A model generated the notes under the pieces. It did no database searches, was not told the DNA's origin, and worked only from the letters and a program-made list of their open reading frames with translations. From Hyphochytrium catenoides (lineage: Eukaryota; Protista; Hyphochytriomycota), in assembly GCA_900088475.1 (NCBI GenBank), contig FLMG01004328.1, positions 1 through 53,210 on the forward strand: a stretch of 53,210 bases of DNA. Direction: 5' to 3'. The stretch's first letter is position 1; each line of letters opens with the position of its first letter. The translations under genes and the position numbers were made by a program. Positions 3,431-41,053 of this stretch are shown piece after piece.

Positions 3431-5185
3431 ATGGCACGCGTTACTTTGGGAAGAAAGAGACAGCGTCAAGAAGGAGGAGACAGCACCAAACAGTCTCTCC
3501 CATCATTCCTCTCCTGCTCTTTCAACCACGGCCTACCTCGAAGGGCAGCTGCAATACTTCTCTCCGCGCTAACGGTCTCTTCTTTCTCATCATCGAGCTT
3601 CCATGATGTCCATGCCGCTACTTCCTCCCCTTCCCCTGCTTCTTCTTCTTCTCTTTATGCCAACGCCACCGCTTACTGGATTGACCCTGAGACACCTTCG
3701 TCGGTGAAGACAATCAAGGCAAGTACTGGGCAGAAGATGGTCTTGGTAGCCAGCGACGAGTTCAATAAGAATGGGCGGACCTTTAAGACAGGAGAAGACA
3801 AGATGTGGACGGCACTAGATACACCTGACGTTACCAATCAAGCCATAGATTATATTGGAGAAGATATGGCCACCACGGAGGGTGGAAGCCTTCGCTTGGC
3901 GCTAGTGAAGGAGAAGAGAGGAGGCAGAGAATTTGTTGGCTCTTCCATACAGTCATGGAACAAGTTCTGCTTCACAGGCGGGAGAGTAGAGGCCAGAGCT
4001 CAATGGCCAGCCGCGACAGGCACTTGGCCTGGCATCTGGATGATGGGAAACCTAGGACGTCCGCAATATGAAGATTCAAACCTAGGAGTCTGGCCTTTCA
4101 GTTATAATGTATGCGACAAGGCAGGAAGCAAGCCCACCGGGCAGAGAATCACAGCTTGTGACCCCAATCCTGGACCAGGACTGCATCCCAACCAAGGGAG
4201 AGGCGCTCCAGAGATCGATATCTTAGAGGCATGGGCCGATGACACCAAGTTCTTCTTCCCTTCTTCCCTGCAAGTGGCTCCATCTCTGCCTCTCTCTTTC
4301 AAACCATATGATGGGGAGATGCCCTCACAACCCTACGGAGGCCCGCAAAACTTCTCCTGGTACGGCGAAGGCGTGACGTATGGGAACGAAGTCAACACGT
4401 GGTATGGACACAATGAGAAAGGCTATTGGTCCAACGCAGTGGCAAATCTTAGGCGACTTAAAAAGGAAGAAAGAGACGCCTTTAACGTGTACGCCGTGGA
4501 GTGGAAACAAGGGGAAAAAGATGGTTATCTCAAGTTCTTCTTCAATGGAGAGTTGCTTCTCTCTCTCTCTTCAGCAGCGCTGAAAGGAAAGTGCGACTCC
4601 TACGGCGAGTGCGTAGGAGACAGAGACATCCCTAACGAGCCCATGGCCTTTGTCTTTACAATGGCTCTCGCTCCCAGCTGGGCGGGAGGAGAGAAAGGTC
4701 TCTCTGCTCTTCCCGCTTATTTCTTGGTAGACTATATTCGCTGGTACCAGGATCCTGCTAGGGTCAACATTGGCTGTGACCCTGCTGACTATCCAACCAG
4801 AGAGTATATTGAGGCAAATCCTAAGATGTATGGCCCGCCCGCTCTTCCGTCTCCGCCGCTCTTTGCCTCTTTCCACTATAATTTCACATCTCTCTCTCGT
4901 CCTGGCCTCTCTCCCGCCGCCTCCTCCTCAACCGCCGCTGTGAGCGATGGCAATGGCAAAGCTAGCAATACGACCACCGGCGGTGCGGAAGGAGAAGGAG
5001 ACAAAAAGAAAGGGAACTTCCTGACACGGATGCCGATGGCAGGGCAAGTCGGGCTGCTAGTTGGCGGGAGTATCTTTCTCAGCGGGATCCTGGCCGGCGT
5101 ACTCTTCTACATTTCAAAACGTCAGAAGGAGAAGGAAGGAGAGTGGGCCCAGTACACTGAGTCAGGGAGATACACAGTTCTTTAA
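3431..5185 (+). CDS. KRE6/SKN1-family beta-glucan synthesis-associated GH16 protein (putative beta-1,6-transglycosylase), type I membrane topology
   Basis: Intact 584-aa ORF with family motifs WIDPETP, LVASDEFNKNGRTF, QSWNKFCFTGG, WPGIWMMGNLGR, VWPFSYNVCD, GRGAPEIDILEA (GH16 ExDxxE at 4211-4228), IPNEPM, VDYIRWYQ and GCDPADYPT. N-terminal signal-like stretch and C-terminal transmembrane helix (GQVGLLVGGSIFLSGILAGVLFYI). Confidence 0.93.
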   Translation: MARVTLGRKRQRQEGGDSTKQSLPSFLSCSFNHGLPRRAAAILLSALTVSSFSSSSFHDVHAATSSPSPASSSSLYANATAYWIDPETPSSVKTIKASTGQKMVLVASDEFNKNGRTFKTGEDKMWTALDTPDVTNQAIDYIGEDMATTEGGSLRLALVKEKRGGREFVGSSIQSWNKFCFTGGRVEARAQWPAATGTWPGIWMMGNLGRPQYEDSNLGVWPFSYNVCDKAGSKPTGQRITACDPNPGPGLHPNQGRGAPEIDILEAWADDTKFFFPSSLQVAPSLPLSFKPYDGEMPSQPYGGPQNFSWYGEGVTYGNEVNTWYGHNEKGYWSNAVANLRRLKKEERDAFNVYAVEWKQGEKDGYLKFFFNGELLLSLSSAALKGKCDSYGECVGDRDIPNEPMAFVFTMALAPSWAGGEKGLSALPAYFLVDYIRWYQDPARVNIGCDPADYPTREYIEANPKMYGPPALPSPPLFASFHYNFTSLSRPGLSPAASSSTAAVSDGNGKASNTTTGGAEGEGDKKKGNFLTRMPMAGQVGLLVGGSIFLSGILAGVLFYISKRQKEKEGEWAQYTESGRYTVL

Positions 5186-10027: not shown

Positions 10028-11836
10028 ATGCTATCTCGCATTTCGGAGCTCTCTACTCCGCAAGAGGGAGGAAATGGCAGAGGAGGAGTGAGAGGACGAA
10101 GAGGCGTAGGCTCTCTCCTTCCCTCTTCTTCTCTCCAATCTCCTTCCTCCTCGGCTGCCTATGACGTCCTGGGAACCCCAAACTATCCTTTCGATGAAGA
10201 TTTGCTTTATGAAGATCCAGACGCGAATAATAGAGCTTCCAGATGGAGAAAAATCATCCGCAATCCCCGAGTTATCGGGGGTTTGGTCGCTCTTTGCGTG
10301 GTTGGCGCTATTATTGGGATCAGCGTGGCCATGCAGAAATCTGGCTCCTCCGTTGAGGACTCGAAAGAGACAGCGTTAAGCAACGGGGGAGAGACAGGGA
10401 GAAACTCTTTCTCTTCCTTCTGGAAATGTGAATATCCGGAAAACTCTGGCAATTGGAGCTCTGCCAACTGTGATCTGAAGACGACGCCCTGCCAGGCTGA
10501 CAGTCTCAGGCCCGCCAAGTGCTGCAAGCTTCCTTCAGAAGGTGCTAGTTCTGAAGATTGTCTGGAAGATGAGCTTCAGAACTGCGATCTGCAGAGCGCT
10601 CCAAATACATGTGAGAGCGGGCCGCGATGGTACTGCCAAAGAGAAGGAGTGGAAGAAGTGGTGCCGGTCTTTTCTCCTTCTTACTGCCCTTCGTTGAGCT
10701 CATCTTTTTCTTCTCCTACTTCTTGCAATGGCTCGGCCACCACGGAGAACTCTGTCAAGGCGCGTTGCTGCGATACCTCTCGCGCTGGCATTGTCTGTCT
10801 CGCTGGAGAAGAGAAAGGAGAGCTTCCTGATGGCGCTTGCCAAGAAGCAGGCCTCCCAAAGCCGACAATTCCATGTGAAGAGAAGACTGAGGGAGAAGAA
10901 GCAGGAGAGACAGGGAAGAAGAGTAGTAGTGGAGAAGAGGAAGAAGGCACGACAGCTCCTTCCGTCATAGTAGGAGAGACCAACAATTCTTCTCGTTCCT
11001 CTCTCTCTCCTACGACGGAGAACTCTCTCTCTTTTGTGACCACTGCTCCATCTTCTTCTTCTCCTCCTACGCCATCTCCTTCACCGGCTCCTACTCCGCG
11101 TCCTACTCCTTCTCCCACTCCTTCCCCAACACCTTCCCCTACGCCCTCTCCTCCTCCTCCGCCTCCTCCACCAGCCAACCCGCCGCCGCCGCTTCCAGCG
11201 CCCAGTCGGCCATCAAGCCCTGGGACCACGATCTTTAACTTCTGCGGAGGAGATACAGACATTTTCTTTGGCGCCACTTCGGAGCCGGTGCCCGCGGAGT
11301 GCCGCGATGGACGCTATTGCCCTAACTTTAACAATGCAAATCCAGCTTTCTGGGTCGCTCCTCGAGGTCGGGGCGGCAGTAACTTTGGCGCGAGGACGAT
11401 CGTAGAATTCTTCTGGTCGCAGACGCAGGCGCTGCCAAACTGGGACATTAGCCTTGTGAAAGGCTTCAACTTCCCTGCAAAGATAGAGTTCAATCTGCTG
11501 GATGGCTCTCCTGGCTCAGATCATCACGTCTCTGTCTGCACCAATGTGAACTGTCCAGACGCCTTCTGGATCTGTGATGACGCTGTGCAGACGCTGTTTA
11601 ACCCTAACTACACAGGGTTCAAGAGAGAAGGATACTTCACAATCACTTTCTGTCCCAATGGGGGAGAGAGAGACACCATTCCGCCACCGTCGCATGCTCT
11701 CTCTCCTCAGACGAGGTTTGTCCAGGGAGAGGCGCCATTCTATTGCAGTTGTCAGACCGCCGTGACGCCTTTGGATCAGATGGAGCCAAAGCCCAGGACG
11801 AGTCTCTCAGGAAAGGATTGTGGGCCCATTCAGTAA
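10028..11836 (+). CDS. type II membrane protein: cytosolic tail, TM helix, 2x 8-Cys repeat, Ser/Pro-rich stalk, small thaumatin-like (PR-5) domain
   Basis: Intact 602-aa ORF. TM at about aa 82-101 (VIGGLVALCVVGAIIGISVA). Thaumatin-like motifs in 11225-11656: IFNFC, TIVEF, WDISLVKGFNFP (canonical YDISLVDGFNxP), CPDAF..CDD and YFTITFCP. (PSPT)n/poly-Pro stalk. Confidence 0.85.
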   Translation: MLSRISELSTPQEGGNGRGGVRGRRGVGSLLPSSSLQSPSSSAAYDVLGTPNYPFDEDLLYEDPDANNRASRWRKIIRNPRVIGGLVALCVVGAIIGISVAMQKSGSSVEDSKETALSNGGETGRNSFSSFWKCEYPENSGNWSSANCDLKTTPCQADSLRPAKCCKLPSEGASSEDCLEDELQNCDLQSAPNTCESGPRWYCQREGVEEVVPVFSPSYCPSLSSSFSSPTSCNGSATTENSVKARCCDTSRAGIVCLAGEEKGELPDGACQEAGLPKPTIPCEEKTEGEEAGETGKKSSSGEEEEGTTAPSVIVGETNNSSRSSLSPTTENSLSFVTTAPSSSSPPTPSPSPAPTPRPTPSPTPSPTPSPTPSPPPPPPPPANPPPPLPAPSRPSSPGTTIFNFCGGDTDIFFGATSEPVPAECRDGRYCPNFNNANPAFWVAPRGRGGSNFGARTIVEFFWSQTQALPNWDISLVKGFNFPAKIEFNLLDGSPGSDHHVSVCTNVNCPDAFWICDDAVQTLFNPNYTGFKREGYFTITFCPNGGERDTIPPPSHALSPQTRFVQGEAPFYCSCQTAVTPLDQMEPKPRTSLSGKDCGPIQ

Positions 11837-12411: not shown

Positions 12412-14118
12412 TTATTTGTCTTGCTTCTTCTTTTTCAGTTTTCTCTTTCTTTTCTTCTTGTGAGAGGAAGGCTTCACCTCCGTGGCCCCTGGTCCTTGTG
12501 TGAGGGCTGTGGAGAGTGCCGGCACCCGCGAGCAATCAACAGAAGACGACAGAGTTGCGGGAAAAGGAGAGAGAGAATCAAAAGGCAGCAATGAACGGGG
12601 AGAGAAAGAAGCCCCGGGAGGAGGAGAAGGGACTGCAGGAAAGGGAAAGAGAGACGGAGAGAGAGCTGCAGTAGGAAAGGCAGCGGACGGGAGGAGAGAA
12701 GCAAGGTAATGCTGCGATGGGGAGGGAAGAGGAGAAAAAAGGAAAGAAGATGGTGGCAGGGCTTCTTCTTCTGGGAGGCTCGGACTCTTCTCTTTCACTT
12801 TGGCGCCTACTATAGGAGCAGTATCTTCCTTTCCCGGCCTTGGGTTCTCTTCTGCTTCCACAGCGGGTGCCGCTCTGCGATTCCGATGGGAGAGAAGAAC
12901 AGGTGCAAAGAAAGAAGGGGAGGAAGAGGAGAGAGAAAGTGCGGAAGAAGAAGAAGAAAGAAGAGAATCTGCTCCTTTCCATGCTGGCTCTCCATGTCCT
13001 CCTACAGAAAATTGCGAGACCGAGACAGGACCAAGAGAGAGAAAGGTAGAGCTTGTTGAAGGAAAAGATGTAGAAGAGGAAGGGTAGCCAGCGGAAGCTA
13101 AGGGGAAAGAGAAAGAAGACGAGGGTGAGAAGGAAGGCGGCGCCAACGGAGTACCAAGGCCGGAAGAGAGGGACAGATTCCCTATTAGTGGCGCTGATTG
13201 AGGAGCAAACGATGAGAGAGCCAGCGACGAAGAGAGAGACTTCCTTTTGGGTTCTCTCTCTCTTTCTTCCTTCACCCGCAGTCCTTGTCTGTCCTCTCTC
13301 GCCTTCGTAGAAGAAGAGAGAAAGGCTTCCAATTTGCCATCCACTTCAAAGGAAAAGTGTGAGGCAACTGTCTCTCCTTCAGTCTCTCTTTTCTTCTTTG
13401 CGTCTCTCTCCTGCGGAGAGTTCAGGATCACCTCCAGAGCGGCCTTCGTGTCTTCATCGAGGAGAGAGCGAGGAGAGAGACGATAGGCATTCTCCATGAA
13501 CTTCTGTCGTTCAAGTCGTTGTTTCTCTTCTCTTTGCTGCTTGCCTGCAAGGCTAAAAGCTTCAATCTCTTCTTTCCCGTCGCCCGCTCGGTCTCTCTCC
13601 TCCACCACCAAACCGTACAGCAAATTGTCTTTGCTCTTCTCTTCTTCCTTTTTTGTCCTCTTGTCCTTTCCCTTTTCCCTTATCTTCTTCTTCGTGGAAG
13701 ACGACGTCACTCTTTCTTGCGTTATCGTCTTCTCTTCTCTCTTTCGCTTCTTGCGTCCTTTCGTGAGAGAGCTCTGGGGAAGGAGAGAGGCGCGGGAAGG
13801 AGGAGAAGGAGGAAGAAGGGCACTTGATGAAGAAGCTTCATCAGAGAGAAACGTGGGAGAGGAGAGAACAGTGGGAGAGAGTGAAGGGGAAGAGAGAGAG
13901 AGTCTGAAGTGTGCATAGCAGAGCTTCTTAGAGAACATCGTCCGACCGCACCCTTCCACTTCACACTGTTGCTTTGCAGCGCCGTGCTGGACACAGACGC
14001 CACCCCGACGCACCTGCAGAAGAAAGAACCAGACCGGGTAGAAATGTAGGTGAGAGACAGAGATAGACATGGAGAGAGAGACTGGAAGAGAGAGGCAGGA
14101 CGCGAGAAAAAAAAAGAG

Positions 14119-14154
<36 letters not shown>

Positions 14155-14352
14155 GAGAGGAGGGAGGGGAAAGGGGGTAGAAAGAAGAGACAAGAAAGAA
14201 GAGGGACCAAGATAGGGGGCTATAAAGAGACTAATATGGATAGAGACACATTTCAACAGGAACAAAGAAGGAAAGCGCTGCTTGCGATGACAAATGGGAG
14301 ACGACAACAGTCCAGACAAGAGACATAACTGTGTGTTCCGGGAGAGAGAGAA

Positions 14353-14383
<31 letters not shown>

Positions 14384-15097
14384 CACGAGAGGCAGTGACG
14401 TATAAAGTAACGAGAAAGAGAGAGAAAAGAAGCACACAAAAAAGAAGCGGTCCATACAGGCAGTTCCTACGACGTTCAGATATGATATGAGCCAGACAAG
14501 CGCCATATCTCCATAATTTTAATGGGGGAGCAAGAGAGATAAAGAGAAAGAGAGAGAGACAGACAGAAGACCTCCGACCTGTGCAGTGCAGCCTGAATGC
14601 GAACATTTCTTATTTCCTTTCCCTCCGTGGCGGACACAGAGCCCAGAGCGGCCTCGTGGCCACTTTGGACAGCCTTCAAAGCGACAGAGGCGGACAGGAC
14701 CGCGTCTCGCTTCTGCTGCCGTCGTGTCTTTCTCTTCCTCTTTCTCTCCTTGACTTTGCTCTCCAAGTGTGCTCTCTTCTCTCTCCTCTTCTTCGTCGAC
14801 TTTATCATCTCCTTTTCTAAGAAGAGCTCTAACTCCTCTTTGCTCTTCTCTATAAATATCTTCTTCGACTTCATCTTCTTCCTCCTGGTAGTTTTTCCTT
14901 CTCTCTTCTCTCTTTCTGTGTCTCTTTCTTTCTCCTTTGTCATATTTCTTCTTCTTCATTTTGGAGGCTTTCCCGACTTCGCTGTGCTGTGCAGCTGGAA
15001 GAAGATGCTGCTCAACGGAGGACGAAGAGGAGAGGGAGAAAGAAGAGAGAGCGGGAGAAGAAGGGAAGTGAAGAGACGAAGAGGACGGTCCTAACAT
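12412..15097 (-). CDS. WRKY19-type zinc-finger (C-x4-C-x9/10-C-x2-H) repeat protein, 2 exons: 15097-14579 and 14013-12412 (~706 aa)
   Basis: A phase-0 GT-AG intron joins KKCSHSGCTAQ to VRRGGVCVQHGA, rebuilding a complete finger between CRFEGCPKWPRGRSGLCVRHGG and CEVEGCGRTMFSKKLCYAH. Basic NLS-like runs are present. The start codon is uncertain and upstream exons are possible. Confidence 0.8.
14014..14578 (-). other. spliceosomal intron (565 bp, phase 0) of the zinc-finger gene
   Basis: Minus strand CAG|GTCGGA donor and ttcttctgcag|GTG acceptor. CT-rich interior. Splicing restores the finger motif. Confidence 0.8.
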
Positions 15098-26543: not shown

Positions 26544-27092
26544 CTGGTCGCGTTCACCATCAGAATGTCTTTCTCTCCGCTCTCGACACTGACCACAAAG
26601 GTGGTGGTGGTTATGTTATGTGGCTGTTCGCTGCTGCAGAGGCTGCTGTGACCCTTTCTTTCTCTCGCCCGTCCTTTTCTCTTTCCTCTCTCTCCTCCGT
26701 CACTCTTTCCTCCTCAACAGCGCCTCTCTCCTCCCTCACACTTCTCACTTTTCTCTCTGTCCCTGTCACCTGCCCGGTGCCAACGATCGACTGACTGTTG
26801 ACAAGCGGGAGGAGGACAAAGGAGCAGCAAAGTCAGAGGCGCCAATTGCTCCTCGCCTCTCTCTCCTTTCGTCTCAGAGGGTAAAAAGCTCAGTAGAGAC
26901 GACAAAGAAACAATGGTCAAGCCTCATCTCCTTTCGCCACTGAGACTGCCACCGCAAACATCGTGCCACAGAGCTAGTGGCGGCGAGTAAAAGACGGAGA
27001 AAGCAGTGACTAGAGAAGAGTCTCTATACCGCGGGAGCTCTGTCCTGACGGAGAGAGAAGGAGAACATCGGAACCCAGACAGAGCGTTTAGG

Positions 27093-29012
27093 ATGGAGAA
27101 TAGAAGAGCCTCGTGGAGGACAAGCGAGGAGGAAGAAGCAAGGAGAGAAGCGTCTCCTCTCTCTCCTGCCTTCGTGTATGCGTCTTCTACGTCTAGTCGG
27201 CCGTTCTTCCTTCAACAACCCCTTTCTCACCGGCGGCAAATGGGAGACACGATAGGTGGCGCTCGAGAGGACCAGTGGGAGAGAGAAGTTGACGAGGAGG
27301 AAGACAAGGGGCGGTACTCTCTCTTCTCTCCTCCCAGCTCACGCCAGATGTACTATAAGCCGTCGTCTCCCACCTACTACTTCTCTTCTTATGTCCCCCA
27401 CCAGCGGGACGGCGATCCTTCCTCGATCTCTTCCTACTTCTACTATAATGAGGAGAGAAAGAGGAGCACCAAGGAGGAAATGAGCGGAGGAGGAGGAGCG
27501 CCTTTCTCTTTCTCTCTTCCTAACTACCAGGAAGAGAAGCTCCGGCGGCCCTCTCTAGAAGAGGGAAGAAGAAGGGATGTAGACTATGATCATTCTCTCT
27601 TCTACCGCGCTGAAGGGAAAGAAGGCGGCCGAACCGGAGAAGGCAGAAGACTTGGCAGGCACGACAAGGATGGCACTTTTCGCCCTTCACCATGGGAATA
27701 TCGAGAGGATGGCTTCTCCTTACCGCCAACGACGTCTTCATCTTCCTCGTCTCCCTCTTCTCCCTCTTTCTTTGTCCAGCCACCACCCGCGGCGACGAAG
27801 ACAGAGGTCCACAGGAACACGGCTTACAAGCGGCCGCCACCGCTAGAGTATATAGAAGATGGCAGAGCACGACGAGATACATTGGGAGACGGGAAGAAGA
27901 GCGATAAAAGAAGAGAGAGAAAGGTCAATGACGAGAAGATCTACTATGAGGATGGCAGGCAGGAGGAGGACGGCATGGGAGGGATGGAAGATGGGATCCA
28001 AGAAGACGGGGTGCAGGAGGATGGAGCGGCAGAACATAAGCCTGCTAGAAGAAGAGACTCTCATCAAAGACAGAATGCTTCTATCCTCGAGGCACGAGGA
28101 CAAGAGGAACTGCTCGATGGAAAAGGAGAAGGGACGACGCCGCGGCGGCGGCGCCTTCGGTGTACGGCGGACCCGAACTGTGGGAAATACGCTGTAAACT
28201 CAGGCGTCTGCGTCCGCCACGGCGCTGTTGTCCCTCGCTGTGCTGTGGATGGCTGTACACGAGGAGCTGTGAGAGGAGGGATCTGTGTTGGCCACGGGGC
28301 AAAGGTGAAGCGCGCAAGGTGCACGTATCCCGGAGGATGCGGCAAGTACGCGCAGAGACAAGGGCTCTGTATGCGGCACGGGGCGCCGCTGCCGAAGAGA
28401 ACTAGAGACAGGGAAGCGAGAAGAAGAGGAGGGGCAATAGAAGATGATGATGAAGATGAACGAGGAGGAGAAGCAGGTGCTTCAGTGCCTTCAGGGCCGC
28501 GAGCGAGTCGCGGCACCGTTGTGGAAGACGGCCATGCAGAGGATGATGGACGGCTCTATGATGGAGAAGTAGGAAGAAGACGTGGCAATAGAGGAGGCAC
28601 CGACGGTGGTACGCTTCTTCTGCCGAAAGGGAGAGAAAAGGACGAGACAGAGGGGGAGGATGAAGGGATCTCTGACGTTACAGTCAGCGACCATTCAGAA
28701 AATGACAACGGCTCTGACGCTTCGCACTCGCCTCCGAGCGGGACACCGCGAGCTCCATCCTCTCACTTTGGAGTCTCTTCCTCTTTGTCTGGTGACTCGT
28801 CAGATGCTCTCCTGGCCCTCCCTGCACTGGAAACAGAGCCACCAGAGACGAAGAGCCAGCCGCCATCTCCCCTCTGTCTCGTAGAGGGCTGCGGAAGATT
28901 TGCGAAGACAGTGCAGCGGACGTGTTTGGAGCACGCAAGGAGTCCTTCCGCTCGTCATCTTGCATCTCTTTCACCTCGGCCTCTCTCCTCATCGGACCAG
29001 CTGGGCAGCTAA
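27093..29012 (+). CDS. WRKY19-type zinc-finger repeat protein (4 fingers), long disordered regions
   Basis: The open frame is 27006-29012, with the first ATG at 27093. Fingers are CTADPNCGKYAVNSGVCVRHGA, CAVDGCTRGAVRGGICVGHGA, CTYPGGCGKYAQRQGLCMRHGA and a distal CLVEGCGRFAKTVQRTCLEHA. There is no WRKYGQK domain. Confidence 0.85.
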   Translation: MENRRASWRTSEEEEARREASPLSPAFVYASSTSSRPFFLQQPLSHRRQMGDTIGGAREDQWEREVDEEEDKGRYSLFSPPSSRQMYYKPSSPTYYFSSYVPHQRDGDPSSISSYFYYNEERKRSTKEEMSGGGGAPFSFSLPNYQEEKLRRPSLEEGRRRDVDYDHSLFYRAEGKEGGRTGEGRRLGRHDKDGTFRPSPWEYREDGFSLPPTTSSSSSSPSSPSFFVQPPPAATKTEVHRNTAYKRPPPLEYIEDGRARRDTLGDGKKSDKRRERKVNDEKIYYEDGRQEEDGMGGMEDGIQEDGVQEDGAAEHKPARRRDSHQRQNASILEARGQEELLDGKGEGTTPRRRRLRCTADPNCGKYAVNSGVCVRHGAVVPRCAVDGCTRGAVRGGICVGHGAKVKRARCTYPGGCGKYAQRQGLCMRHGAPLPKRTRDREARRRGGAIEDDDEDERGGEAGASVPSGPRASRGTVVEDGHAEDDGRLYDGEVGRRRGNRGGTDGGTLLLPKGREKDETEGEDEGISDVTVSDHSENDNGSDASHSPPSGTPRAPSSHFGVSSSLSGDSSDALLALPALETEPPETKSQPPSPLCLVEGCGRFAKTVQRTCLEHARSPSARHLASLSPRPLSSSDQLGS

Positions 29013-30095
29013 GCTTCTTGTCAAACCGGCAGCACCGGCAGCAGCTAAGAATACGAGGGAAGAGGGTCTGGCGCTTGCTTTGCCAGTTGTAAGGTCTCAG
29101 TGTAGCTCTATGTTGAGGAAGGAGTAAGGTTGATCTCTATTGTCTAGAGGTAGTGACTCTATGTCTATATATGCATCTCCAGTCGTTGCTTCGTAGTAGA
29201 TCAGTACTCTGTGCTCTACGGAGGCCATTGCTGAAGAGGGACAAACCTCCATCAATTATGGGTACCGGTAGATCCTCCCCGTGCCTCTCCACTCGGTGTG
29301 CCGTGGGTCGCTGCAAGATCTTTAGTCCAAGATGCTCCTCTTGATGTCTTTGACGGCGGCCGGCCGCCGACACGAACTGCTACTAAGTTTTATCGCTTCT
29401 GTCTCGTTATAACATGGAGTCTGGTTGTGATGTGTCGGCATGATAAAGGAGTTTGGCTTTTCCTCCCCATACCTTCTCCCCCAGCTGTTTGTTGTCCTCA
29501 CTTCGCTCTTCTCCCTCCTGCCTTCGCCCCACCTTTTACTGTCTCTGCTCTCTTTCTCTCTCTCTTCCTGCTTTTTCTCTCTTATTTATCGCTCTCTCAT
29601 CACCGCTCTCTCACACAATGTCAGCTGTTGTCCTCTCTCTCTCTCCTCCCTTGTCACCTCCATTCTCTATTTGTCTCTGCTCTCTAATTCACTCTCTTCT
29701 CTCTCTTTTCTCTCTCTATCTCTCCTGATCACTCTCTCATCGCCCCTCTCACACACTGTTAACACTATATTATGGTCCGCTAGCAGTGGCACTCTTCATG
29801 ACTATAGTGGAGGTTCATTAGCAGTGCTCTTTATAAGTTGTAGGAGGCACACCCAGGCAGGGAGACACTAGAGCATTACGCTGAAGAGGAAGAAGAACCC
29901 TAAGACAGAGTTCCAAGAACGGGATGACGACGAGAACTGAGACGAAAGAGATAGGGACAAACAGATAGGGAACACCGAGGACTCCCAAATCTTAGGAGGA
30001 TCGCTGGGAGAGTCTAGCTAATATCAATGCGGATTAGAAGAAAGGCGATAAAGCCCTTTCATCTCCTCCCTGAGCCCGTAGGTCAGTGGAGGTGC

Positions 30096-30465
30096 TCACA
30101 GGAAAGTGACGGCTCCGTTGAACATATAGTAAGCGCCCACCACCTGGGTGCCGTTCTCCTTTATAGCCTGCGAGATGTCAGGGTCCGAATGTAGAGCGTC
30201 GACCTATCGAAAAGACATCCAAGAAGGAACGACAAAGGTTAGGACACAGAGAGAGGATGTCCACGGGAAGGGGAAGAGAAGAGATGACAATGGTATCCAT
30301 GCTCTAAGCCGGAGAAGATGTATGTCGGAGGAAGGACGCGTCGAAGGGAAGAAAAGCAACTTGTGCTGCTGAGATCAAGAAAAGAGACACATTGATGCAG
30401 AACGGGAGATAAGAGCGTGAGAGAGCTAAAATGGTATAACGATTGAAGGGGAGATAAAAGCAGGG

Positions 30466-30517
<52 letters not shown>

Positions 30518-32359
30518 AGAGGGAGAGAAAGAGAGAGGAGCCGTACCTGATACTCTACATTAGCGATGCATCCGCAGAGCACTGCTTCATCCATACCGGC
30601 CCCGTTCTGCAGCTTGGAGGCAGGGATGCCCTCCTCAATATTGGTAACAAGCTCTAGCAGGTCTCGCGGGAGAGTCGACCGCACCTTGTTGTCCTTCATG
30701 GCCTGGATGGTGGCAGAAACAGCCCCACAGCCCTGATGGCCCATAACCACGACCAGAGGCGTGTGCAGCTGAGGGTCAACGAGACAGAGGAAGTAGCGTG
30801 AGTGGCGAATTATGTGGCTGTGCTCGGTCTGCTCTCTCTCTCCCGCTCTCTCTCTCTCCATCCCCCCTGTTTCTCTCGTCGCATGAGCCTCTTCCCGTTG
30901 ATCTTACCTTGGTCAACGCATAAAGGATGCTTGCGCGGGCGTAGCTGCCTAGCACATTGCCGGCTAATCTAATAACAAACACGTCTCCCAGCCCTTGATC
31001 AAAGACAAGCTCAGGTGGCGCTCTGCTATCACTGCAAGAGATGATGATCGCGTGAGGACTCTGTCCTTGGTGCAGCTCAAGCTTCTTTAGCAAAAAGTTC
31101 TCAGGGTTCTGCGAAGAAGAAACTGAGAGTTCCTGACTCAAGAAGCGCTTATTGCCCTGCTTGAGCAGATCCAGCGCCTCTGTCGCCGTCTTCACTTTCA
31201 CCGTTTCTTCCGTCTTCTTCTTCTCTGCTTCCTTCTGCGTGGGACTTCGTCTCTCATTCCTCCTCTCTCTTCGGCCTACGGGGGAACCAGGAGAGGACGG
31301 AGAAGAAGAGGATGACGAGAAGAGAGGATGGCGGCTTTCGCCCTCGAAGTCATACCATTCGTTGACGTGATAACGCTCAGACATGTCTATAGAAGAGAGA
31401 CGCCGTCGAGAGTTGGACATCTCTTCCTCTTCGTCAGCATCTGCAGTCACGTCCGAGGAAGAAGAAGAGTGAGATGGTTGATGACCGTCAAAGAAACGAA
31501 ACTTGGACAGCTTCTCGGTTGCTCCTCGAGGGCCTAAGAGAGAAAAATCATGGTCGTCTGCCGGGTCAAGAGACAAAAGAGAAGAGAAGAAGGAACCTTT
31601 CTTGCCCATCCTCGTTCTTCTGCCTGCCCTTTGGTTCTCTAGGTAAACTTGAACACTCTCTTCGTGGTGCTGCCGCTGCTTATGCAGAAACTGGATCTGC
31701 TGCTGAAGACTATGCCGCTCTACTTCCAGGAGAGAGAGATGATGATGATGCTTCTGAAGGAAAGCTCGTGCTCTATCTACCTCCTTCTCTAGCAATGCCA
31801 GCTCTCTCTTCCTTTCTTCCCATTGTCTTCTATCCTCCTGCTCCTCCTCCAGCCGATTCAAGAGCTCTGGGACCATGAAGAAGCGCGCCTCTCCCACGAC
31901 ATCAGCCAGACTAACACCAAGCGCTCTGGCTCTCTCCACGACATTCGTCTGCCCATCATTTCGGATAAATTCCAGGAGAGTCTCGAACGCTCTAGGATTT
32001 CGATCAATGTGGAAGCAGCCAGAGTCATCTGCAGGCCATTCATCGCCACCTAGAGCGGCGAAGAGAGATGTGGGATACTTCCTCAGCTGCCTGACGGAGA
32101 TCTCAAATCTCTTTCCGCCTACGCTCATGCAGATCATCTCTCCTTCTGGATTGGTTCTTCCTTCTTCGCTGTCGTCATCTGGAGGAGGGAATGCAATGGC
32201 CCCTAAGAGCCTCTGTGCGACAGCGTGCAAGTGCTGCCTCCACCACTGAAGTTCCTCATCGCCTGCGGTGAGGATATCGGACGGATGAGGAGACAGCGTT
32301 GGAGCTGGTGGAGGAGAAGGAGGAGAAGAAGGGCGCCGCCGTCGGCCGTGCAGCGCCAT
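30096..32359 (-). CDS. KCTD-type BTB/POZ + coiled coil + beta-carbonic anhydrase fusion, 3 exons: 32359-30908, 30768-30547, 30203-30096 (~593 aa)
   Basis: BTB (T1/BTB_2 type): ICMSVGGKRFEISVRQLRKYPTSLFAAL...FHIDRNPRAFETLLEFIR...EARFFMVPEL. Beta-CA: ALDLLKQGNKRF, GQSPHAIIISCSDSRAPPELVFDQGLGDVFVIRLAGNV, YALTK|LHTPLVVVMGHQGCGAV, NVEYQ|VDAL...VVGAYYMFNGAVTFL*. The Zn ligands Cys, His, Cys and the Asp-Arg dyad are intact. Two phase-0 GT-AG introns. The start ATG is uncertain because it follows a CAG, so an upstream exon is possible. Confidence 0.9.
30204..30546 (-). other. intron 2 of the BTB-beta-CA gene (343 bp; contains a (CT)n tract at ~30468-30512)
   Basis: CAG|GTACGG donor and ttttcgatag|GTC acceptor. 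Splicing gives a canonical beta-CA C-terminus. Confidence 0.85.
30769..30907 (-). other. intron 1 of the BTB-beta-CA gene (139 bp)
   Basis: AAG|GTAAGA donor and gaccctcag|CTG acceptor. Splicing gives YALTK-LHTPLVVVMGHQGCG. Confidence 0.88.
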
Positions 32360-32783
32360 CTGTAGGTCCCACTTTGGGAACTCTTTTGACGGGTGTGACA
32401 AAGAAAAGTGAACGACGAAGAGAGAGGAAGAAGGAAGAAGATCAGCTTCTTTCCTATCCAGATCTTTTCTCTTTCTCCGTCTCCTTCCCCGACTTCCCAA
32501 GGATCCGGTCAAGATTGGTTGCCACCGGAGAAGGTTATGCTTTGCGCTCTCTTCGTCTCTCTCTCTTGCTTTCTTTAGCAGCGTTAGACCTTCAGCCTGC
32601 TACTAGCATGGGCACGGGTAGGAGGAAGCGGTGCTTCCTCGCACAAAAAATTGGGCCTGAGATCCTCCTTGCTATAGAGAAAGCGCTAGAATTATGATGA
32701 AGAGAGAAGTAAGTGTAAGACCGGAACTATTAGAGAAAAAGGAAGTGGAAGGCGTAAGGAGCATCGATTGTGACCAGTCTCTC

Positions 32784-32847
<64 letters not shown>

Positions 32848-33477
32848 ACACACACAGACAACACCCGACACGGTCCTCAAAGAGGATAATCCATAAATCA
32901 GGGATCTCCGATGAATCGGCAGGTCTCCGTTTCCTGCTGTCTCTCCCTTTCTGCCGCCATTCCCTCTTCTGCCAGAACCAGCGTGTCTCTTTCATGGTGA
33001 TAGCTCCATGTCCTCCTTCTATAGACTTTAGGCTTTCTGTTCTTTCCCATGACTCTAACATTTCTCTGCTCACCATAACCTTTCGTCACTTCTGATGATG
33101 ATGGATATCTCTCTCTCTCTTTCTTTCTCTCTCTCTTCCTCCTTCTTCCCCCTCTCTTTCTCGTTCCACTCTCTCTGTCCTCCCTCTTTTGCTTTTGTCT
33201 CTCTCTGTCTCTCGTCCCTGTGCGCCCCTGCCTCTCTCTCTATCATCATCATCAGAACAGCCAGGACTGCAAGCTTTTATAAAGAAGATCATGCAGATCA
33301 TGGTTTCTGGTAGAGGAAAGAGTTGAGAGATGATAACGGCCGTGCACCTGCAGGATCGCTTCTCTTGCTTCTCATGCAGCCGCTGATCAGAGTGATCATA
33401 TGACTCGGAACTGGCTCTCTCTCTCCTTCTATCCAGGTGTCTTTTCCCTTACTTGTACGACCTCCTTCCTCCGTTTG

Positions 33478-33745
33478 CTCTCTCTCTCTCTCAGTCTCAC
33501 TCTCTCTTTCTCTCTCTCTCAGTCTCACTCTCTCTTTCTCTCTCTCGTCCAGTGAGTCTCTCTCTCTCTGTTCTCTCTCTCTCAGTCTCTCTCTCTTTCC
33601 TCTTCTCTCAGTCAGATTCTCTTTTTTCTGTCTCTCTCTCAGTCACTCTCTCTCTCTTTCCTCTCTCTCTCGGTCGGTCTGTCTTTCTCTCTCTCTCCAC
33701 TTGTCTCTGACTCTCACACTCTCTTTCCTGTCTCTCTCTCTCTTT
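33478..33745. repeat. compound (CT)n tract punctuated by recurring CAGT units
   Basis: Repeated ctctctcagt(c) motifs embedded in CT runs. Confidence 0.85.
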
Positions 33746-36156
33746 CTGCCTCCATCGCTCTGCTTATTTCACTGGCTTTGCTATCCTAAAAGAACTCAAC
33801 CCGTGCGTACAGTCTGTGCTGGGCTGGCCGGGCGGGCACGTGCCCCTTCCGCCCTTCTTCCGCACTTATCGTGCCCACCGACCAGAAAGATCATGACGGA
33901 TTGTAGTTTGTTACAGGGAAGATAGTAACCTAAGTAGGTTTAGGCCGCTCACGCACCTTTAGTCAACATAAAGGGCGCACATATCTGCTTCTTGGCAAAT
34001 TGTCAGCATAATGACTATTATAGACGAGACCGGTGCACACTCCACTTTCCTGAGGACGTGCGCAGAAGCCTGTTCTACTCTATTATCTGAGAGTAGGGGG
34101 GACAAGGGGGAATTTGAGATGAATCTAGAACCAAATTACACCTTGCTAAAAGCCCCTTTCTTTAGAAAGGAGAACCGACGGTTCCTAGACCTAAATATAG
34201 TGGTGTCTTTTATTATGAGAGATGGAGCTAATAAACTGATTAGCATCACAAAGACGACTTACCCTGTCTTATTATAATTGGCATTGCATTTTAGAACTGA
34301 AGCAGCCATAATCTTATAGAGCGACCAATCAAGGGTGGATTTAGGGATTTAGACGCAGAGTAGCAAAAACCTTTTCCAGGTTTGGGTAAGGCTTTACATA
34401 AGAGAATGTTAGGAAATGTACTATATAATTTTAGGCGCAGGGTCTGCATTGGGTAGCGGGCACGTGTCTCCTGATTCGATCGCAGTCGGGGCCGCAGCAG
34501 ACCAGCAGAAGACAAAAGATCATCTTTCTTTTCCCTCGTGGTGGAGCTCTCAGATCTCTGTCTCTCTCTTCTTCTGGATGATCTCTGTCTTCCCGATAAC
34601 TAAGGATCGAGCCACACAATGAGGATGAGCAGCAAAGCGAGATAGTAGGTTCATACTCTCGCCTTGGTCCTCTATGGGCTGGGCTATAGCTGTCGGTCTG
34701 GGAAGGAAGAACGGCTCATCCCTCCTCCTCCTGCTTATCTGCCTCGCTCTGACACGGAGCATGCATGTAGGTTGAGGCTCTAACAGGTCTGCTTGCTTGT
34801 CGCGTATCTCCCTCAGGTTGCGCGGCGGGGAGAGCGGGAGTAGGAAAGATGGATGAGAGAAGGGTAAGAAAGGCACGCGCAGCTCGGTGTCCCCCTTTCT
34901 TCTCTTGATGAGTCTTCTGGTGAGCATCGCAGCCGATCGGCGGCACGCGCAGATAGTGTCGCGTGCCCTCTCAGTCTTCTCCGTACCTATCATGCTGGTT
35001 CCTGCCTTGCCTTGGCTTGCCATCCCACACCAAGCGCAAGCAGGAACGGTGAAGAAGAGCCAAAGTCGAGGGGAGAAGAAGAAAGAAGGCAAGGGAGGGA
35101 GAGAGAGAGACGGAACGACGAGATAGAATATCTCCTCTGCTTTGTTGCGACATTAGCCTACTATCTATAAGGGCTAGCTAAAGATCCTTCTTTGCACAGT
35201 ACTGCCTGCCCCCTTTTGTTCCACGGCCTCTCCCTCTGTCTAGAGAGTTCGCTCGCCTATCTTTTCCTCCCGATAAGCCACGCGCCTCCTGCACTAGAAA
35301 CTGAGTCTCTGCCGCTGGCTTCTTCTTCCTCATCGTTCACGTATTATTGTCAAAGACTCCATCTTGCTGCTGCGCGTGGCCGTTTTCAACTTACGACCAA
35401 AGCCAAGTGACCAGGATTGGCTTCCATTGTAGAACATGCGAGAGAAACCTACCGCGTCCTCGAGGAAGACACAGTCAGATCAATAGCCACCAGGGAACGG
35501 AAAGAAAAGACACTAGAGCAGGAGGGGAAGAGTGTGGGCAGCGAGAGACAACTAGTAGTGGCACAAAGGCACGAGTCGGTAGGATATGCGTACGGAACCT
35601 GAAGAACCCTCCGGAGGAGCATGAGACAATCAGTTGAACCGCCTGCTCGCTGTCCTTTCCCTCGTCTTCATCTAGTCGTCCCTGCCCGATTTCACTTTCT
35701 TGTGAGGACAGCTAGCCTAGTAGGAGGTAATCCATAATAGCAGCTAACCAAGAATCTATCATCATGGTACAGGCACTTGGATCCTCAAGACGGACTCTGT
35801 CTGTCCCTTCGCTTGGTGTCTCTTGTGAGATTTCCTCCCGCCGTAAAATATAAATCTATTCTTCTTAACGTGAGCTTGGTAGCGGGATGAGTTCAGTGTC
35901 AGCCGTTTAAAGCATCAATCAGTCACTTCTCAACTTTCTCCTGACCTATCATGCCCAGCTGCTCACTGCTTGGGCTAGACAAGAGGATTAGGACTGAACA
36001 GTCTCAAATTTAAGATTTTTCTTTTCTTAGCCTTCAGAATTCTATCCTCCTCCCTGCATTGTTTCTCATAAGCGGTGGTGTGGCCTGTCAAGAAGGAGAT
36101 ACTAAGCTGACCACATCCAGAAGATTGCCTGGTAGGGAAAAGGACGAAATAGCAGA

Positions 36157-37254
36157 ATGTCAGACTCTAAAGCATCCGCGATGGCTCCCGTCAACCTGCG
36201 AGAGCAAGGAGGACGAAAGGCTCCAACGATGAACCTTGCCACCCCTTCTTCCTCGTCTTCTCCCTCTCTCTTTTCCCTAAAGTCCGCAGCACAGCTAGGG
36301 GCTGACACTGTGGCTGCCGCTGTAGCCTCCCTCCTAGTCTCTCCGTTCATCACTGTCATCGATCGTGCCATCATAGAAAATGCATCAGGAAAGGTGCAGA
36401 TGTGGCCAGCAATTAGACAGTACGGAAGGAGCTTCTTCTCTTCTCCCTTGCGCTTCATGACCAGAAAAGAGTTTGGACTCGTCTTCGGTCTCTACTTCGC
36501 AACGTATGCGACCGCCAACTATGTTGATACAGTCTGTGAGAAACTCGAGAAGGACCCCATGGTGCCTAAGTTTATCGGCACATCCTTCGTCAATGTCGGT
36601 CTCGTCCTTGTCAAGGATCGGGCCTTCACAAGGATGTTCGGTGTGGGTCCTCCCAAACCGTTGCCGATGATAACCTATGGTCTCTTCGCCATCAGAGACT
36701 CGTTGACCAACGTTGCGTCCTTCTCTTGCCCGGCGCTGCTGAGCTCAAAGCTTCAAAACTCAATGGAATTGTCTAGCAAAACTTCAGATACTGCGGCGCA
36801 GCTCATCTCTCCGTCTGCTGTGCAGTTCATATCGACGCCGCTTCATCTCATTGGCGTAGAGTTCTATAACAATGCAAAGAGCAGTGTGGGCTCTCATCTC
36901 TCTCTCATTAGAAGAGAATATTGGCGCTCTCTTGCTGCCAGAGTCGGGCGCATCGGACCTGCTTTCGGATTTGGAGGCCTAGGAAACAATCATGTAAGGT
37001 CCAAGCTAAGACACGTCTTTGAGAACCTCGACGGCGCCTTCTTCTCCCCTTCTGCCAAACCTATCTGGTCTCCCTCTACTCCTGCAGCAGCAGTCGTGAG
37101 TCCCCCGCTCTCAGCTGTAGGCTCCAATGGGTTAGCTTCAGTGGCAGCATTGGCTGGTAGTGCGGCTCCCGGACGAAGGGCCTTAGGGTCAGGGATGGTG
37201 AAGACTCTTCAGTGTCTTTCAGCGGATGAACAAAGCTCGTCATCTATGCGGTGA
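36157..37254 (+). CDS. divergent mitochondrial-carrier-like membrane protein (family of S. pombe SPBC365.16-like proteins of fungi and protists)
   Basis: Intact 365-aa ORF with ASLLVSPFITVIDRAIIENASG, LYFATYATAN, KDRAFTRMFG, YGLFAIRDSLT..ASF, AQLISPSAVQFISTPLHLIG and RVGRIGPAFGFGGLGN. These match my recollection of this family. It has three paired hydrophobic segments with degenerate carrier-signature prolines. Confidence 0.75.
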   Translation: MSDSKASAMAPVNLREQGGRKAPTMNLATPSSSSSPSLFSLKSAAQLGADTVAAAVASLLVSPFITVIDRAIIENASGKVQMWPAIRQYGRSFFSSPLRFMTRKEFGLVFGLYFATYATANYVDTVCEKLEKDPMVPKFIGTSFVNVGLVLVKDRAFTRMFGVGPPKPLPMITYGLFAIRDSLTNVASFSCPALLSSKLQNSMELSSKTSDTAAQLISPSAVQFISTPLHLIGVEFYNNAKSSVGSHLSLIRREYWRSLAARVGRIGPAFGFGGLGNNHVRSKLRHVFENLDGAFFSPSAKPIWSPSTPAAAVVSPPLSAVGSNGLASVAALAGSAAPGRRALGSGMVKTLQCLSADEQSSSSMR

Positions 37255-39949: not shown

Positions 39950-41053
39950 ATGGGAAGAATGAGATTTCTTCCCTCTTATCGTGTGGTTCTCTTCCTGCTC
40001 TTTGCCCTCTCTCTTCAGAAGCACGGCTGTGAAGCAGAGGACAAGAGAAGAGCTGAGGAGGAACTTGCCGTGCAAGGCGTTGAGGAGATAGCCGCTGCGG
40101 TACCTGCAGTGCAATTACCCGTGAAAGGAGAGAAACAAGAAGGAGGAGGGCTTCTTCCATTTCTAGAAGGCGAGACGTTAGGCTACGAGGATTTACTGGT
40201 CAATCCCTCACTGTCTTTCCCTGCTCTTGCCGCTATGGCAGCAGGAGATGGTGGAGCAGGCGCGAGCTTATCAAGGAAGTTCTTCTTTATCAATGCCTGC
40301 TTCCGGCCCGTCGACCTCTATTTGGCCTACTACCCGTCCGATCCTTCCCTCGCGCCCGCGCCTACACCGACCAACGCTCCATCTAACGGAGAGCCTTCCC
40401 CTTCATCAGCGTCTCCTACTTCTCCTCCTGTGTCTGCTTCTCTCCGCGTTTACGACGCCTATTGGAAGCTCGCGGCCAACGAAAGCTTGGATCCTCCGCT
40501 TCCTCTCGGGGAAGTGGGCGGCAAGAGGCTTATTGAAGCTTCTGTCAATCTTACTGAAGCCTTCTTCTATGCGGAGACTGTCCCTAAAGAGTTTGTCTGG
40601 GCAGGTTCAACAAAGCAAGAAGGAGAAAAAGCAGGAAAGAATGTGACACTGCAAAATGGTGTCTCACTGTATATGAGGAAGATCCTTGCGGCTCCTCTCC
40701 TGCATTCCTCGGCTGATGGATCTCCTGCTTCACTCTCTCCATCCTTCCTAGACTTCTACGTAGAACTGCGCTGTGATCGGACGGCAGTCAACTCGTCCGC
40801 TCCAGGAGGCAATGGAACTAAAGAAGGAGAGGAGAACACGACGCAGCCCCCGTTTGTCTCTCCCCCTCGGGTTGATCCCGATAACTCTGGCACAATGAAG
40901 CCTGGACTGAATTTAACGCCTTCAGCACCGCCAGCAGCACCTCCATCCTCACCTGCCGCTTCGTCTGCCACAATGAACGTCCAGTGCGTAGGAGTCCTGA
41001 TTCTTGCGGTTGTGGTCTCTTCCATAATGGAGTCGCTCTTTTCTTTCTCATAG
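39950..41053 (+). CDS. secreted, probably GPI-anchored protein with a DUF1036-like domain
   Basis: Intact 367-aa ORF. Signal peptide (VVLFLLFALSLQKHGCEA). Core FINACFRPVDLYLAYY...YWKLAANE...FFYAET...VWAG...VELRC resembles the DUF1036 pattern. Several NxS/T sequons, a Pro/Ser stalk, then small residues (AASSA) and a terminal hydrophobic tail with no charged cytosolic tail. The CDS is well supported; the domain call is tentative. Confidence 0.7.
   Translation: MGRMRFLPSYRVVLFLLFALSLQKHGCEAEDKRRAEEELAVQGVEEIAAAVPAVQLPVKGEKQEGGGLLPFLEGETLGYEDLLVNPSLSFPALAAMAAGDGGAGASLSRKFFFINACFRPVDLYLAYYPSDPSLAPAPTPTNAPSNGEPSPSSASPTSPPVSASLRVYDAYWKLAANESLDPPLPLGEVGGKRLIEASVNLTEAFFYAETVPKEFVWAGSTKQEGEKAGKNVTLQNGVSLYMRKILAAPLLHSSADGSPASLSPSFLDFYVELRCDRTAVNSSAPGGNGTKEGEENTTQPPFVSPPRVDPDNSGTMKPGLNLTPSAPPAAPPSSPAASSATMNVQCVGVLILAVVVSSIMESLFSFS

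Follow-up and report, generated by a model that had tools for sequence, protein, structure and literature searches.

Architecture of the BTB-carbonic anhydrase gene

The window analyzed here is a stretch of 53,210 nucleotides from Hyphochytrium catenoides (contig FLMG01004328.1 of assembly GCA_900088475.1), and on its minus strand lies a gene that joins a T1/KCTD-type BTB domain to a beta-class carbonic anhydrase (CA). Exon borders placed by motif search and open reading frame (ORF) listing give three exons and a 593-aa product of ~66.5 kDa (Table 1), referred to below as BTB-CA. The analysis established its domains, its catalytic residues, its open frame, its splicing (by homology), and its contiguity in the genome.

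In the case of the enzyme, Pro_CA (PF00484) was matched separately by exon 1 (residues 437-483; E 2.3e-12, 47.9 bits) and by exon 2 (E 4.8e-7, 30.6 bits), both above the Pfam cut-off of 25.7 bits. The motifs CSDSR, GHQGCG, and VVGAYY begin at residues 442, 494 (nt 30741-30724), and 579, respectively. The zinc ligands and the catalytic dyad (Cys442, Asp444, Arg446, His495, and Cys498) all fall in columns that are invariant across 11 homologues and Rv3588c of Mycobacterium tuberculosis, the closest solved structure (2a5v, 1ym3; exon 1 E 1.1e-14, exon 2 E 3.9e-5). Rv3588c (CanB; PDB 2A5V/1YM3) shares the CxDxR plus HxxC zinc site and is equal in domain length, but it is a bacterial single-domain protein of ~210 residues that lacks a BTB, a coiled coil, and a linker. 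Judged by these residues, the CA is most likely an active, Rv3588c-like beta-class enzyme.

The same comparisons fix the splice junctions. The CA part of exon 1 aligned to chain residues 15-98 of 2a5v_A and exon 2 to residues 100-140, so that junction 1 is in register, with exon 1 ending at chain residue 98 and exon 2 starting at residue 100. When the spliced model was aligned by MAFFT with 11 homologues, no gap fell at either exon junction against the homologues P0002, P0023, and P0073, and the model reached the extreme C terminus of all three. Exon 3 alone had no Pfam or PDB match because it is short. According to these alignments, the three-exon splice model is correct and the enzyme half is complete through its C-terminal strands. 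The start codon is the ATG at 32359, from which the frame runs uninterrupted to 30908, and the TGA stop occupies 30098-30096. A search for RNA runs listed none, and the runs of DNA or unknown type compared with the locus (X2, X4, X5, and X7) contained no visible splice joints and are silent on splicing either way.

At the other end of the protein, Pfam recognized BTB_2 with E 2e-10 and 41.3 bits, well over its cut-off of 21.4, and the best sequence matches in PDB were SHKBP1 (1.9e-8), KCTD9, KCTD13, KCTD10, and T1 domains of Kv4. The final model of this domain was made with AlphaFold2 (AF2) from the BTB alone, using a 9-row alignment that included the eight BTB repeats of protein P0014. It reached a predicted local distance difference test score (pLDDT) of 88.8 and a predicted template modeling score (pTM) of 0.79, and it superposes on KCTD9, SHKBP1, KCTD5, KCTD1, and KCTD17 with template modeling (TM) scores of 0.75-0.88 and root mean square deviations of 1.8-2.4. 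The 50 best PDB matches listed for the model were all of the T1/KCTD type, comprising KCTD proteins, SHKBP1, one Kv channel, and two designed BTB fusions. BTB-CA thus shares the T1-type fold of the human KCTD family and SHKBP1 (5BXH KCTD9, 4CRH SHKBP1, 3DRZ KCTD5, and 4UIJ KCTD13) at ~30% identity, and its BTB is N-terminal, as in the KCTDs. The two differ in what follows: KCTDs carry a KCTD C-terminal domain, WD40 repeats, or pentapeptide repeats, whereas Pfam found no KCTD_C or related match behind the BTB of BTB-CA, where a coiled coil, a linker, and the enzyme stand instead.

A single-sequence AF2 model of residues 66-270 produced a poor BTB (TM ~0.4) and was replaced by the alignment-based model for that domain. 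In the single-sequence model, residues 163-250 form a single helix with pLDDT 90-95, and one heptad register (register 6) can be followed from ~174 to 243, with a hydrophobic fraction of 0.62-0.75 at the a and d positions. The linker behind the helix is rich in Ser, Glu, Arg, and Asp and contains two RRxS-type motifs as well as two in-frame methionines, Met333 and Met345; it is predicted to be flexible and is possibly phospho-regulated.

No part of the 593-aa product resembles a signal peptide or a transmembrane segment (maximum KD19 hydropathy, 1.33). The first 30 residues are rich in Arg, Pro, and Ser, with four Arg and one acidic residue, and their maximum KD hydropathy is ~0, so the N terminus is not hydrophobic. 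The protein is probably soluble and cytosolic, and the composition of this region is compatible with a mitochondrial presequence but does not establish one.

An earlier note on this DNA, made from its letters and ORFs alone, had read the locus in much the same way. It had put the BTB at about 32134-31850, where Pfam places BTB_2 at 32128-31862, and had assigned the BTB, the coiled coil, the linker, and the first half of the CA to the single exon 32359-30908, in agreement with the uninterrupted frame and the Pfam matches. Its two canonical introns completing the enzyme (GHQGCGAV; VVGAYY) held up as GT..AG introns of phase 0 with gapless junctions, its catalytically complete beta-CA was borne out by the full-length domain with all zinc and dyad residues present, and the hydropathy of the N terminus agrees with its statement that there is no signal peptide.

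Table 1. Positions of the BTB-CA gene and its parts in the window
Feature	Position	Strand	Details
Whole coding region	30096..32359	-	593 codons + stop; assembled model, Pfam matches, homology over both junctions
Exon 1	30908..32359	-	484 codons: N-terminal region, BTB, coiled coil, linker, first half of CA; GT donor right after 30908
Intron 1	30769..30907	-	139 nt, GT..AG, phase 0; a stop at 30776 would end read-through
Exon 2	30547..30768	-	74 codons; middle part of CA with GHQGCG; Pro_CA match
Intron 2	30204..30546	-	343 nt, GT..AG, phase 0; CT microsatellite; strong haplotype divergence
Exon 3	30096..30203	-	35 codons + TGA; C-terminal CA strands VVGAYY..GAVTF; aligned to homologue C termini
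Pro/Arg/Ser-rich N-terminal region	32135..32359	-	residues 1-75; no signal peptide
T1/KCTD-type BTB	31862..32128	-	residues 78-166; Pfam BTB_2 (PF02214)
Long helix/coiled coil with His-rich patch	31610..31873	-	residues ~163-250; AF2 and heptad pattern
Ser/acidic/Arg low-complexity linker	31190..31594	-	residues 256-390 (~135); composition
Beta-CA, first half	30908..31189	-	residues 391-484; CSDSR (Cys442, Asp444, Arg446; nt 31036-31022)

Relatives of the two domains

An exhaustive search of exon 1 against 1.84 billion representative proteins returned 8035 matches, and the 150 best of these were inspected. They were beta-CAs, many of them tandem CA-CA proteins, plus one protein with eight BTBs. 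When the N-terminal 385 residues were compared by phmmer with all the proteins retrieved, a BTB came up in that eight-BTB protein and in no other. As a two-domain fusion would score at the top, a relative carrying both the BTB and the CA is absent from the best matches. Word-index searches with the whole of exon 1, the BTB part, or the CA part also found no BTB beside a CA. The CA part gave 17 matches, none of which contained PF02214, and the BTB part gave nothing at E <=0.01, a weak negative in that a 40-bit domain cannot pass at such a database size. In metagenomes, a scan with a single-protein query found no loci, and a scan with a CA alignment found 80 loci, in none of which a BTB turned up within 3 kb. 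When the N-terminal half was compared with all 84 metagenome loci by tblastn, no BTB lay next to a CA. Neither the word-index search nor the exhaustive search of representatives found the window's own protein, and its unspliced ORFs of 527 and 578 aa had no record when looked up by exact match.

Literature searches on BTB or KCTD with carbonic anhydrase brought up papers on bromothymol blue, on NPR1, and on other subjects, and none that describes an architecture joining a BTB or KCTD to a CA. The earlier note had known of no described BTB-beta-CA architecture, and the representative, metagenome, and literature searches uncovered none; the lack of an orthologue keeping both domains, which it had named among the outcomes that would refute it, is so far what was found, as far as these searches reach. 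From its distribution, the fusion appears to be a lineage-specific, orphan architecture. Each domain taken by itself is an ordinary member of its family by sequence, and what is new here is their combination.

In a FastTree tree of 120 CA domains, the enzyme half grouped with P0023, P0086, P0073, and P0002 with a support of 0.98. These four are 56-65% identical to it, come from short metatranscriptome contigs, and are probably protist. They share with BTB-CA the C-terminal motifs ASILYA, NV.HQ, and GAVTF(F), and the CA of BTB-CA belongs, by this tree, to a small protist subclade of the Rv3588c-like kind. Several of these beta-CAs have a low-complexity N-terminal extension, and none has a BTB. 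P0002 and P0073 both open with a Met, and the gene calls on their contigs leave no room for one (in P0002, 54 nt lie upstream). No BTB is hidden upstream of P0023 on its contig, where the sequence is AT-rich with in-frame stops. That contig (L004 1-252) is 29% GC, and its in-frame stops just upstream of the called start are of the TAA/TAG type; they would fit a ciliate-like genetic code, in which case P0023 may be longer than called.

Beta-CAs are usually stand-alone proteins, and known fusions put them on anion transporters or duplicate them. Both kinds of fusion recur among more distant kin of this CA: P0007, a EukProt transcript, is fused to a Bestrophin_2 channel; P0008, P0009, and P0171-P0174 are fused to SulP/STAS transporters; and P0001 and P0010-P0013 are tandem double or triple CAs. 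As CA kin are repeatedly fused to Bestrophin_2, SulP, and further CAs, a tethered CA appears to be a recurrent theme. The partner in those other fusions is a membrane channel or transporter or an extra CA, whereas the partner in BTB-CA is a soluble assembly domain.

A probable single coding unit and its possible roles

Whether the two domains belong to one protein turns on the sequence between them. The 220 codons between the BTB and the CA fold (codons 171-390) contain zero stops, an outcome with P ~0.0006 in a first-order Markov simulation, and the other two frames contain 4-7 stops per segment over the same distance. The linker by itself (codons 256-390) is free of stops in frame, whereas its other two frames hold 6 and 7, and the probability of no stop here is 0.003-0.013. 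Codon log-odds, scored after training on seven of the window's long ORFs, were also best in frame 0 over linker codons 241-360.

A second line of evidence came from other sequencing runs. Overlapping Logan contigs of X2, an independent DNA sample of the same organism, cover 29800-32700 and reveal two haplotypes (at 30178-30455 and 31173-31289) of a diploid, heterozygous organism. The poly-Ser stretch at 31300-31450 is spanned by individual reads of unrelated metagenomes. Because the chain of X2 contigs covers the locus and single reads bridge the poly-Ser stretch, mis-assembly of the BTB-CA locus is unlikely. In exon 1 the haplotypes differ at only five sites, all within codons 367-386, with three nonsynonymous changes, two synonymous ones, and no new stop. 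Intron 2 diverges strongly by comparison, with 23 substitutions and 14 gap letters in 275 nt. Use of the haplotypes as a selection test was dropped as unclean, since they do not differ in intron 1 or in the 5' flank either. The earlier note had argued that the fusion is no artefact of joined gene models, and the shared frame, the absence of stops, and the second haplotype that keeps the frame all speak for it.

We infer from this evidence that the BTB and the CA are expressed as one protein. The explanation that we favor, with a probability of roughly 0.5, is that the locus is an intact nuclear gene for an active beta-CA in which the BTB and coiled coil set the assembly state or dock a partner through a long, flexible, possibly phospho-regulated linker. 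The N-terminal assembly module would consist of the T1/KCTD-type BTB and a coiled-coil helix of ~85 residues, and the enzyme, the C-terminal 200 residues, would be tethered to it by the disordered Ser/acidic linker of ~135 residues. The BTB and coiled coil would decide the location and assembly state of the CA, either by self-association into higher-order particles or by docking onto a partner. The CA itself would carry out ordinary interconversion of CO2 and bicarbonate, and in a heterotrophic, osmotrophic stramenopile it may supply bicarbonate for carboxylases or buffer pH and CO2. Enzyme activity, oligomerization, localization, and physiological role are in this explanation what we infer from the architecture.

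Several observations weigh against a single protein, and most of them fit a different account, in which the BTB-coiled coil and the CA are made separately, either because an internal promoter leads to initiation at Met333 or Met345 or because the linker hides an intron or a poly(A) site, and the open frame is incidental or a very young read-through. Met333 and Met345 are in frame and lie 45-60 residues before the CA fold, where either could start a CA-only product, and in P0073 and P0086, both kin of the CA, the N-terminal extension is short and holds no BTB. Most of the differences between alleles in the linker change the amino acid. No single X2 contig runs from the BTB to the CA, as the contigs break at low-complexity sequence in the linker. 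The codon log-odds score does not discriminate between frames in the charged coiled coil (codons 161-240). Conservation cannot vouch for function, since no search found a relative with both domains. Set against separate products or a mis-joined model are the stop-free 220 codons with both domains sharing one frame, the codon usage of the linker, a frame that is intact in both haplotypes, and the independent single reads across 31300-31450, and we regard this account as unlikely.

Other accounts accept one protein and give the BTB a more specific task. T1/KCTD BTBs and beta-CAs each oligomerize, and BTB-CA has three potential self-association modules set apart by its disordered linker. One possibility, the second option of the earlier note, is that the mismatched symmetries of a BTB tetramer or pentamer, a coiled coil, and a beta-CA dimer or tetramer build a CA-rich mesh or puncta, here, unlike in the note, with no role in carbon concentration. 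This follows from geometry alone, the closest BTB match is of the SHKBP1 type, which is not an obligate pentamer, a signal peptide that would lead to a plastid or pyrenoid is lacking, and the host is probably non-photosynthetic, all of which leave such a network quite doubtful. More doubtful still is a Cullin-3 (Cul3) adaptor, in which the BTB recruits Cul3 and the CA replaces the KCTD C-terminal domain as a substrate-binding or CO2/bicarbonate-sensing end, with ubiquitination responding to inorganic carbon or pH. The nearest solved BTBs in sequence and fold include the Cul3-binding proteins SHKBP1, KCTD9, KCTD13/TNFAIP1/KCTD10, KCTD5, and KCTD7, and an N-terminal BTB with a second domain at the C terminus is the layout of KCTD adaptors as generally known for the family. 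However, the T1 domains of Kv channels and of KCTD1/15/16, which do not bind Cul3, match about equally well, and we know of no sequence signature that separates Cul3-binding from non-binding BTBs. The KCTD C-terminal domain is also absent according to Pfam, and every catalytic residue of the CA is kept, as in an enzyme. Taken more broadly, the claim that the BTB gives the CA a signaling or scaffolding job, be it as the sensing end of a Cul3 ligase through which CO2, bicarbonate, or pH controls ubiquitination, by docking on a T1-bearing channel, or in a CA network of mismatched symmetry, seems to us similarly improbable; we know of no CA with such a job.

If an active CA is positioned by its BTB and coiled coil, as we favor, a soluble T1/KCTD BTB and coiled coil placed before a complete beta-CA would control the site and the assembly state of a CA in a new way. 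With such a protein, nature would also have provided a case in which to ask if inorganic-carbon chemistry can be linked to assembly driven by a BTB or to the recruitment of Cul3. Its value is limited by an architecture that is so far an orphan of one lineage and by expression as one protein being no more than probable, and it has no bearing on algal carbon concentration. On this last point we depart from the earlier note, whose interpretation stands where it concerns a BTB_2/beta-CA architecture in one exon and one frame, stays conjecture for Cul3 recruitment and for a network or condensate, and falls where it considered a part in a carbon-concentrating mechanism. Stramenopile plastid proteins need a signal peptide. 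BTB-CA shows no plastid or pyrenoid targeting of the kind expected in a photosynthetic host (an endoplasmic reticulum signal peptide followed by a transit peptide), and because the signal peptide is missing and the host seems to be a heterotrophic stramenopile, a carbon-concentrating role is unlikely.

Host and neighboring sequence

The host is probably a heterotrophic, non-photosynthetic soil stramenopile, as the SKN1/KRE6 gene in the window and the history of the sequencing runs suggest. Those runs, two from 2011 on one sample and one from 2017 within the same study, agree with the account of Hyphochytrium catenoides sequencing in PMC5795050, a paper that also describes a 454 cDNA set. Reads or contigs 99-100% identical to exon 1 (31300-31450, 31614-31764, and 32156-32408) also occur in X4-X7, which are soil, rhizosphere, and bovine metagenomes from 2023-2025 and one unlabelled 2025 run. 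These matches reflect either the organism or a very near relative at trace level or a contaminant.

Elsewhere in the window, four long ORFs had no Pfam match at E 0.01 (36157-37254 on the plus strand, 10028-11836 on the plus strand, 12412-14439 on the minus strand, and 39950-41053 on the plus strand). An ORF at 3431-5185 on the plus strand encodes a SKN1/KRE6/Sbg1 protein of beta-glucan synthesis (Pfam E 4.7e-85), and its nearest Atlas clusters are oomycete and diatom ones. The microsatellite of intron 2 lies at 30456-30540, and further long CT/GA microsatellites lie in 32700-33900. The ~3.6 kb upstream of the BTB-CA gene are gene poor, and the ORFs called there are low-complexity artefacts. 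On its other side, convergent with the BTB-CA gene, lies a 668-aa ORF (27006-29012, plus strand) that encodes three WRKY19-type zinc fingers (PF24906, E 1.9e-13).

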